DNA of 64,000 nucleotides, taken from the sequence record MT995927.1; one strand, given 5' to 3'. The notes below the pieces were generated by a model, which was not told the DNA's origin, searched no databases, and saw nothing but the letters and a program-made list of their open reading frames with translations. Below are positions 2,273 to 18,134 of this stretch, in pieces (positions within the stretch are counted from its first letter, which is position 1; every line of letters begins with the position of its first letter). The translations under genes were made by a program, and so were the position numbers.

Positions 2273-3517
2273 ATGGGTCTTTATGCCAAAGTTGTTGATC
2301 ATGATGAAGTACATGATCAATTTACGGGTAAACGTATTTATGCCAATGATTACAATACGAGTAACTCAGATGAGAAAGAAGAATTTGATAGGCATTTCTA
2401 TTCTCATTTCCAAGATTCAGAAGCAATTGAAAGTAGCGTAAGTTGTGATTGTCGAGCAATCGAAGACGCACATAAACTCGGAGTAATCTGTGATATTTGT
2501 AATACTCCAGTTGTCAATACTTCTAGCCGCCCTATCGAACCATCAATGTGGGTTCGTACACCAAAACATGTACGTAGTCTAATTAACCCACGTTTAATCA
2601 TTATGCTAACTGGATATCTAGTAACTAAAGAATTCGATTTCTTAGCATATCTAACCGATACTTCTTATCGATACGATGTAGAATCCATTGCCTCTAAAGA
2701 AACACGCAGGAAAGTAGATAGACTACTGCATCGAGGATTTGAAAGAGGATTAAATCACTTCATTGATAACTTCAATGAGATCTTCCAATTCCTACTAGAT
2801 GCAAATATTATCTCTAATAATAAATCCGAATTCGCTCAATTCATTGCTCAGAATAAAGATAAGCTATTCCCTAAATATTTACCAGTTCCTTCTAAACTCT
2901 GTTTCGTAGCAGAATCAACTACATCTGGTACTTACTTAGATAAACCAATTGAAGCAGCAATTGACGCTACCTTAACCTTCGCTAGTATTGATGCATCGTC
3001 TGTACCACTTAGCCCTATTAAAGCTCAGAATAGGACTATGCGAGGACTAAGACTATATGGCCAGTTCTACGAGATCTACGCAAAATCACGAATTGCTCAA
3101 AAGCCTGGTCTTGCTCGGCGTCACATGTTTGGTGCTCGTCTCAACGCTACGGCGCGTGCAGTAATCACTTCTATTAGTGACCCGCATGATTATGATGAAT
3201 TACATATCCCTTGGGGAGTAGGTTGTCAATTATTAAAGTATCATCTAACTAACAAGTTAAAAGCTAAGTTTAACATGACAACTCGTGAAGCATTCTCATT
3301 TGTATATGAGAATGTACTTCAATATAACCAAATCATCGCTGATCTATTTAAAGAGTTAATTGCAGAGGCTGCACCATATAAAGGAATGGGTTGCACTTTT
3401 CACCGAAACCCGACCCTTCAACGTGGATCTACTCAACAATTCTTTATTACTAAAGTAAAAGATGACATTAATGATAATTCAATCAGCATGTCAGTATTAT
3501 GCCTTAAAGCGCCTAAT
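2273..3517 (+). CDS. nvRNAP beta-prime N-terminal subunit, exon 1 (phiKZ gp55-like)
   Basis: N-terminal Zn-ribbon (CDC...CDIC) and RNPTLQ motif. Ends ...LKAPN; joining to 4002 gives the catalytic NADFDGD (487 aa spliced). Confidence 0.93.
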
Positions 3518-4001
3518 CGGACAAGTAACTAACCAAATAAGGTAAAAACAATGGAACAAAACGGAGTAGTGTCCGTCTTTGATCCGGCTTCATTTAAAAT
3601 TGAATATGAAGTGCTTGATAAATACCTTATTAAGTTAATCAAGTCTAGTTCCCCCAGTGAGTAATCATTGGGATGAGTTCTCTCTAATTGCTGGGATATC
3701 CTGTTAAACTAATCTACCACTGCGAGTCGAAAGACAAAGCCAAGGTTTGAAAAAGATTAGGTAGGGCCAATCAGCAGCCAAGCTCCGTAACATTCCATTT
3801 AGGAATAGGAGAAGGTTCAACGACTATTACGGTATCAGGTGCACCGGTCCTAGAAATAGGATGTAGGGTCAAGTGACTCGAAATGGGAGACACCCCACTC
3901 CGAAAGGAAGGGTGAAGATATAGTCTGGTCTGCATGGTAACATGCAGCAGGTGGTAATTATACTACCGGGTATGGATTAACGACCCATACTGAACATAAC
4001 G
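3518..4001 (+). mobile_element. Group I self-splicing intron, 484 nt, no homing endonuclease
   Basis: Exon ends in U3517 and intron ends in G4001. Core P AATTGCTGGGA (3686), Q AATCAGCAG (3769), R GTTCAACGACTA (3815), S AAGATATAGTC (3915). IGS GTCTAGTT 3643-3650 gives a U.G pair at the splice site. Removal restores NADFDGD in frame. Confidence 0.93.
3551..3664 (+). CDS. 37-aa mini-ORF inside intron loop L1 (MEQNGVVSVFDPASFKIEYEVLDKYLIKLIKSSSPSE)
   Basis: SD-like TAAGGT 7 nt before ATG; translated by hand. Confidence 0.45.
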   Translation: MEQNGVVSVFDPASFKIEYEVLDKYLIKLIKSSSPSE

Positions 4002-4220
4002 GCGGATTTTGACGGCGATCAATTGAATCTTACATTAATGCCTGATGTGTATTTAACTAAAGCAACTGAACGCATTGCTCCACATACATGGGTTCTATCT
4101 ATTGATGAACCACATGAAATCTCAGGTAACCTTGAATTACAGGGTCCTGTTGTAGAAACAATTATTAACTGGGCACATGAGAAGTATTTACCACCATTAG
4201 AAGAGTGGTTGAAGTCGTAA
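4002..4220 (+). CDS. nvRNAP beta-prime N-terminal subunit, exon 2 (ADFDGDQLN...; phiKZ gp56.1-like)
   Basis: Begins GCG GAT TTT GAC GGC GAT, in frame with track ORF 4023..4220. Confidence 0.93.
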   Translation, partial: ADFDGDQLNLTLMPDVYLTKATERIAPHTWVLSIDEPHEISGNLELQGPVVETIINWAHEKYLPPLEEWLKS

Positions 4221-17821: not shown

Positions 17822-18134
17822 AATTAATATCTATCCATCTTTTAGGAGGTGAGATGGATGTTTTAAAATTGCCTGCTTGATTTCGAAAGAATCAAGTAAA
17901 TCCTCTCTAATTGCTGGGACATCTCATTGAGACAATCAGCAGCGAAGCTTTCCAGAAATGGATTGAACGTTCAACGACTATCCGGTTACGCGGAGTACAC
18001 TCAAGCGAGTGGAAATGGGAGGGGCCTGACCACCTAGGGTGAAGGTCAAGATATAGTCTGGTCTGCATGGCGACATGCAGCTGCCTGCAATACGAGAGGC
18101 GGGGTAAGCGTAGCGAACTTACTTGAACATAACG
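17822..18134 (+). mobile_element. Group I self-splicing intron, 313 nt, no homing endonuclease
   Basis: U17821 and terminal G18134. P1 GGU|AAUU pairs with AAUUGCC 17867-17873. Core P (17909), Q (17934), R (17969), S (18048). Removal gives FHGG-KGVICKV. Confidence 0.93.

Follow-up and report, generated by a model that had tools for sequence, protein, structure and literature searches.

A 37-codon open reading frame in the P1 loop of a Phikzvirus group I intron is probably the remnant of a homing-endonuclease gene

Results

A group I intron lies within the catalytic motif of a phage RNA polymerase gene

The DNA analysed here (the window) is a stretch of 64,000 nucleotides from sequence record MT995927.1, and by its sequence it comes from a phiKZ-type Pseudomonas jumbo phage. 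Region 3300-4220 is 100% identical to the corresponding DNA of phages T2P, U1B, U5 and phi9_PA9 and 88-96% identical to that of about 35 other Phikzvirus records. The open reading frame at 2273-3532, which is preceded by the nuclear-shell (chimallin) gene, is the homologue of phiKZ gp55. The two exons were searched against solved structures one by one, rather than as a joined sequence. Exon 1 matched residues 21-435 of PDB chain 7ogp_A (E = 1e-284) and exon 2 (4002-4217) matched residues 436-506 (E = 5e-45), with no gap between the two matches, residues 435 and 436 being contiguous.

The DNA between the exons contains a match to the Rfam group I intron model RF00028 at 3627-3947 (80.4 bits, above the curated threshold of 50; model positions 1-253 matched). 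The intron was placed at 3518-4001 because only the cut at U3517/C3518 and G4001/G4002 yields the protein joint ...KAPN-ADFDGD...; its last base is a G. It splits the catalytic NADFDGD motif of the beta-prime gene of the non-virion RNA polymerase (nvRNAP). The exon 1 frame runs into a UAA shortly after the splice site (Table 1), a typical feature of group I introns in bacteria and phages (PMC3073962). The P1 pairing between the exon-intron boundary and the internal guide sequence, including the U3517-G3648 wobble, was read from the sequence, and its intron-side pairs (3519-3522/3643-3646) were recovered in the minimum free energy (MFE) fold.

Two features of the intron ends vary among relatives. 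C3518, the first intron base, is an insertion polymorphism shared only with KEN51 and KEN49 and absent from most relatives. The 3' end of the intron (3932-4001, from P9 to the splice site) has two haplotypes, set apart by a 15-nt indel and many substitutions.

Table 1 Features of the gp55 locus (window coordinates unless another record is named)
Feature	Position	Strand	Basis or remark
Exon 1, N-terminal beta-prime-like subunit of non-virion RNA polymerase (phiKZ gp55 homologue)	2273-3517	+	415 codons, end ...LCLKAPN
P1 5' strand	3515-3522	+	Sequence; 5' splice site after U3517
Group I intron, form without homing-endonuclease gene (putative relic), 484 nt	3518-4001	+	RF00028, exon contiguity, spliced joint in RNA contigs
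UAA ending exon 1 frame, 13 nt into intron	3530-3532	+	ORF 2273-3532
SD-like AAGGU	3539-3543	+	Native ribosome-binding site of the endonuclease gene; same context upstream of phiKZ gp56
Putative relic ORF, 37 codons, ATG start	3551-3664	+	gp56 residues 1-18, 28-29, 318-334; no Pfam domain
Deletion junction, 891 nt of endonuclease gene missing relative to phiKZ-type alleles	3600-3612	+	blastn break, RNA contigs
Internal guide sequence, P1 3' strand	3643-3650	+	Complementarity to 3515-3522; G3648 opposite U3517
P2 hairpin, GUAA loop 3661-3664	3653-3672	+	Rfam match, folding
Exon 2, ADFDGDQLNL... up to stop codon, phiKZ gp56.1	4002-4220	+	7ogp_A alignment
Extra exon 1 intron of relatives	kmuB L003 1613-1862; AttikonH10 L010 98-347; KEN49 L007 413-712		Group I, ~89 bits

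Excision of the intron is visible in RNA of close relatives

In 14 RNA-seq runs about 40% of the words of 2273-4220 were found, a share that fits phiKZ-type phages. All of the RNA runs found were of phages of this type with an intact endonuclease gene, none of the relic type, and they were searched as contigs, which do not give RNA levels or RNA ends. In four runs, one from each of four studies, contigs carry a joint between 3517 and 4005 with GCT inserted. Because GCT is the relatives' alanine codon at 4002-4004, this joint is the 3517/4002 junction. In three of the four runs the junction contigs extend at least 204 nt to both sides. Intron contigs are present in the same four runs as well; between 3605 and 3611 they contain 896 additional letters, the intact endonuclease gene. 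Run X1 also has one contig across the unspliced exon-intron boundary. Thus, the host reading frame is restored by excision, as shown in RNA of close relatives rather than of this exact phage. The junction contigs come from short reads; a long-read study, by contrast, reported finding no evidence that the phiKZ gp56, gp72 and gp179 introns are spliced (10.1101/2023.10.13.562163).

The phiKZ-type intron contigs of runs X4, X7 and X8 begin at the first intron base (window 3518-3541). Those of X8 and X4 start with at least one extra G that is absent from the genome; contig ends are unreliable, and such a G would fit the guanosine added at the first splicing step.

The ORF in the P1 loop shares both ends with the phiKZ gp56 gene

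The original prediction described an SD-led ORF of 37 codons that occupies loop L1, crosses the internal guide sequence and stops in the GUAA loop of the next hairpin, and every one of these elements is present. AAGG (3539-3542) lies 8 nt ahead of the ATG. Since about 120 nt separate the two P1 strands, most of the ORF lies in L1. From there it passes through the guide sequence to the UAA at 3662-3664, inside the P2 loop. In the 3' tail of the ORF all three frames stop by 3664, and the guide is crossed only in the native frame.

The same intron of phiKZ bears PHIKZ056 (gp56), annotated as an HNH endonuclease of 334 residues, with the same start relative to the splice site. An 896-nt gap interrupts the blastn alignment of the window to phiKZ (break at window 3605/3611 and phiKZ locus 1806/2703); the flanking segments, 3400-3605 and 3611-4208, align at 93-94%. 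Both ends of the ORF are homologous to the ends of gp56, so it is no chance frame: the SD, the ATG, the first 18 codons, the last 17 codons and the stop in the P2 loop are the same. T2P 167048-167107 matched gp56 residues 1-20 with 90% identity, and the YE pair in the middle of the peptide corresponds to gp56 Y28 and E29. What is missing is gp56 codons 19-27 and 30-317 (297 codons, 891 nt), including every recognised domain of gp56, in which Pfam finds NUMOD4 (18-40), HNH_3 (72-116) and three NUMOD1 domains; the 37-residue product had no Pfam match at E 0.1.

The break points of the deletion coincide with short repeats, AT on the one hand and ATGAAG versus ATGGAG on the other (KEN51/LC-type alleles). 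A loss in two segments that kept the Y28 and E29 codons appears preferable to a single microhomology deletion; alternatively, a single complex event may have occurred, or the 6-nt island may match by chance. We rejected a single deletion between the GAATGG repeats of a phiKZ-like allele, since its product would be 2 nt too short and out of frame.

Based on these matches we consider it highly probable (roughly 0.87) that the mini-ORF in the P1 loop is what remains, in degenerate form, of an HNH homing-endonuclease gene of the phiKZ gp56 type that belonged to the intron itself. A truncated endonuclease had been named as one alternative in the original prediction, and it is this alternative that the shared ends, the shared SD, ATG and stop and the loss of 891 nt bear out. 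The relic, as read from its codons, encodes no nuclease or DNA-binding module and would be unable to promote homing. The GenBank record of T2P labels it 'HNH homing endonuclease', and that of kmuB 'truncated HNH homing endonuclease'.

Several decay alleles coexist among Phikzvirus isolates

Among 40 Phikzvirus records with the intron, L1 is short in 17 and about 1 kb long in 23. The short forms are two alleles with different junctions. Type A (the window, T2P, kmuB, 30-1, AttikonH10, GUMS, SL2 and others) lacks 891 nt, is in frame and encodes 37 residues. Type B (Koomba1, Churi) lacks 893 nt, with the crossing in an A-run, is out of frame and encodes 21 residues, ending at a TGA equivalent to 3616-3618, about 25 nt short of the guide sequence. 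Two of the long forms carry nonsense codons, KEN49 at position 18 and ANB1 at position 28. By these alleles, inactivation of the endonuclease gene has occurred at least four times independently, and in three of these cases translation from the same start would end well before P1 and P2. Read-through into the ribozyme core is not conserved, since type B, KEN49 and ANB1 stop at codons 21, 18 and 28. The phages with the out-of-frame deletion or an early nonsense codon, in which translation ends 17-27 codons in, were isolated as plaque-forming phages.

The type A deletion occurs on both haplotypes of the intron 3' end, which suggests recombination. The gp55 exon 1 of kmuB, AttikonH10 and KEN49 contains an extra group I intron about 120 nt upstream of the one studied here (Table 1), which the window lacks. 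In KEN49 a third RF00028 core (L007 2239-2542) follows directly after an 18-nt stretch encoding ADFDGD, so that the catalytic motif lies in an 18-nt micro-exon flanked by two introns.

Other introns of these genomes were also compared. The identical T2P record has four RF00028 introns and phiKZ three. An intact gp56-like HNH gene lies beside only one of the T2P introns (31% identity, 364-residue open frame); phiKZ has three such genes. The fourth T2P intron (MT995926.1 65404-65641, 69 bits) has no counterpart among the three phiKZ matches. The second group I intron of the window (RF00028 at 17854-18080, 81 bits; region 17822-18080) has a strong SD, AGGAGG, and a tiny ORF from 17855. The phiKZ, FBPa36 and OMKO1 sequences match it only from window 17853 on, the point at which the gp72 HNH gene lies, and most other Phikzvirus records are short like the window. 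This intron is probably another scar of endonuclease loss.

Substitutions in the ORF show no sign of constraint on a peptide

Variation was scored in 15 alleles with the two flanks aligned separately. When short and long alleles were aligned jointly with MAFFT, the large gap was misplaced and the resulting variability values were meaningless. In the separate alignments the value for the ribozyme core, 59 variable sites of 267, is inflated by the extra intron of KEN49 and was not used. In the last 100 nt of exon 1 all 10 variable sites are synonymous (10/10). The relic has 6 variable sites, of which 4 are non-synonymous and 2 synonymous. A dN/dS-type comparison in relatives had been suggested as a check on the original prediction; its outcome gives no sign of coding constraint on the relic, and the frame itself is lost in type B, so that purifying selection on peptide or frame is not seen.

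In the leader (3518-3550) 12 of 33 sites vary, as against 3 of 49 at 3551-3599 and 3 of 52 at 3613-3664. Two changes in the 3' half of the relic swap one standard P2 pair for another (G-U to A-U and C-G to U-G), and this half appears to be constrained as ribozyme. The low variability of the 5' half would fit either a recent spread or a structural role, with no sign of constraint on a peptide.

Two observations nevertheless speak against a wholly neutral relic. The commoner deletion allele is the one in frame, and if it arose in two steps each of them was in frame (chance about 1/9), which could hint at selection on the frame. In addition, 3551-3599 is far less variable than the 33-nt leader, which could reflect constraint on RNA structure or a very recent spread.

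The SD is predicted to be paired in an extension of P1

Region 3505-3700 folds with a z-score of -2.8. In the MFE structure the P1 stalk is extended by 3530-3533/3634-3637 and then by a 9-bp helix, 3536-3544/3623-3631, that contains the SD and is found in the centroid structure too; two further hairpins are predicted at 3553-3585 and 3587-3612 (MFE). Within the 9-bp helix the SD AAGGU would pair with 3624-3628. Its mean probability of being unpaired is 0.17-0.34, depending on the context folded, for a helix that is predicted only and shows no covariation. Sequestration of the ribosome-binding site is the usual way in which phage introns keep ribosomes off the core (PMC3073962).

The stub may have been kept as RNA, a P1 extension of about 110 nt that aids P1 formation or docking, such that only deletions sparing its helices (the two extension helices and the two hairpins at the tip) survive. 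This would explain the near-identical end points of two independent deletions, the ends of the two alleles being a few to about 30 bases apart, and it agrees with the z-score, with the closing of the loop by the 9-bp helix and with the low nucleotide variability, about 6%, at 3551-3599 and 3613-3664. However, the helix strands are nearly invariant and therefore provide no covariation, and once exon flanks are added to the fold the pair probabilities drop to 0.23. An imperfect direct repeat (TTTRAAA...GAATGG), present at either end of the gene, also accounts for the similar end points, and low variability also fits a recent spread. We regard retention of the stub as RNA as unlikely.

We also considered a broader form of non-neutrality, in which residual translation tunes splicing of the gp55 precursor or the stub RNA is a required extension of P1. 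If this were true, deletions that retain the start, the frame and the natural stop would be at a selective advantage, and this would account for the prevalence of the in-frame allele and for its occurrence on several flanking haplotypes. We hold it to be very unlikely.

Translation across the guide sequence is poorly explained as a splicing switch

The course of the ORF over the guide had led to the proposal of translation-gated splicing: ribosomes loading at the relic SD would melt P1 and P2 and block splicing, which would thereby be confined to the ribosome-free vesicle or phage nucleus. The geometry, an ORF that runs over the guide and P2, is real. It is physically plausible that ribosomes translating an intron ORF can interfere with splicing, and this is already documented for I-TevI in the T4 td intron, where ribosomes on the intron core cause a splicing defect when the hairpin around the ribosome-binding site is mutated (PMC3073962). 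Chimalliviruses, moreover, uncouple transcription and translation (PMC12908238).

As a function, however, translation-gated splicing is not supported, because the overlap with the guide and P2 predates the deletion, having been inherited from an intact 334-residue gene with the same stop; because sister phages (type B, KEN49 and ANB1) end translation before the guide and yet form plaques; because the relic shows four non-synonymous to two synonymous changes where the adjacent exon shows only synonymous ones; and because the SD is predicted to be mostly paired. The known effect in T4 is, furthermore, a cost that is being suppressed rather than a gate in use. If splicing is complete before export, ribosomes would meet only spliced mRNA or the excised intron, and given transcription in a ribosome-free compartment (PMC12908238), splicing probably does precede contact with ribosomes. 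A ribosome on the relic would cross the guide, in a geometry that is inherited and unconserved and that is probably muted by pairing of the SD. A side effect of relic translation on splicing may occur. Gating itself we consider highly improbable.

A functional small protein, the remaining alternative in the original prediction, is scarcely credible: the peptide is identical in most type A phages (the exception is GUMS, S14L) and the deletion is in frame, but these phages share a single recent deletion event, type B makes a different product of 21 residues, most substitutions between alleles are non-synonymous, Pfam finds no match and half of the peptide is dictated by ribozyme helices.

Discussion

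We favour the reading of the mini-ORF as the stub of a gp56-type endonuclease gene. The lineage that led to this phage lost 891 nt of it, probably at short repeats (AT, ATGAAG/ATGGAG), and retained the ribosome-binding site, the start and 20 codons from the N-terminal end together with 17 from the C-terminal end. In the intact gene the 3' tail already overlapped the P1 extension, the guide sequence and P2, an arrangement known as core creep, and this tail would have been kept as ribozyme and not as coding sequence. The intron would still self-splice at U3517 and G4001 and so restore the NADFDGD active-site motif. We infer that the relic peptide has no selected function and that any translation of it is low, with the SD predicted to be paired, and does not gate splicing.

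The stub would thus represent the degeneration stage of the homing-endonuclease cycle, a stage that is already recognised in database annotation. Ordinary gene decay would suffice and no new mechanism, such as a new splicing switch, is needed. With intact genes, two nonsense alleles and two independent deletions at one site, the Phikzvirus isolates form a compact natural series of the life cycle of a homing endonuclease. For annotation, the 114-nt CDS called 'HNH homing endonuclease' in several GenBank records would be a domain-less relic; it should be marked as a pseudogene remnant inside an intron, and the two gp55 exons should be joined.

The closest known counterpart is phiKZ gp56 (PHIKZ056) itself, which shares the intron, the insertion site in the host gene, the SD, the ATG and the stop, and to which the 18 N-terminal and 17 C-terminal residues of the relic belong. 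Unlike gp56, the relic lacks 297 codons and all recognised domains and cannot be an endonuclease. I-TevIII is a truncation of which phage RB3 has the full-length version. The title of PMC2790892 calls I-TevIII of the T4 nrdB intron 'defunct'. As at the locus studied here, a phage group I intron that still splices holds a non-functional ORF of an HNH-family endonuclease; the T4 case differs in its host gene, in the intron loop and in its larger remnant. In Phikzvirus, in contrast to T4, several independent decay alleles coexist with intact alleles within one genus.

The T4 td intron with I-TevI resembles the Phikzvirus intron in that the 3' end of the ORF overlaps ribozyme helices and the ribosome-binding site lies in RNA structure (here predicted). 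Premature translation lowers splicing in td (PMC3073962). The T4 ORF, however, is intact and lies in P6, and its regulation was shown by mutagenesis, whereas here a stub lies in P1 and sequestration is predicted. The same topology as that of gp56 and its relic is found in the tRNA-fMet intron of Synechocystis, where the I-Ssp6803I ORF is inserted in P1 and shares 61 nt of coding sequence with P1/P2 (PMC3073962, Table 1); that endonuclease is intact, belongs to the PD-(D/E)XK family and has a tRNA host gene. Core creep of this kind is an established pattern in many intron endonuclease genes (PMC3073962).
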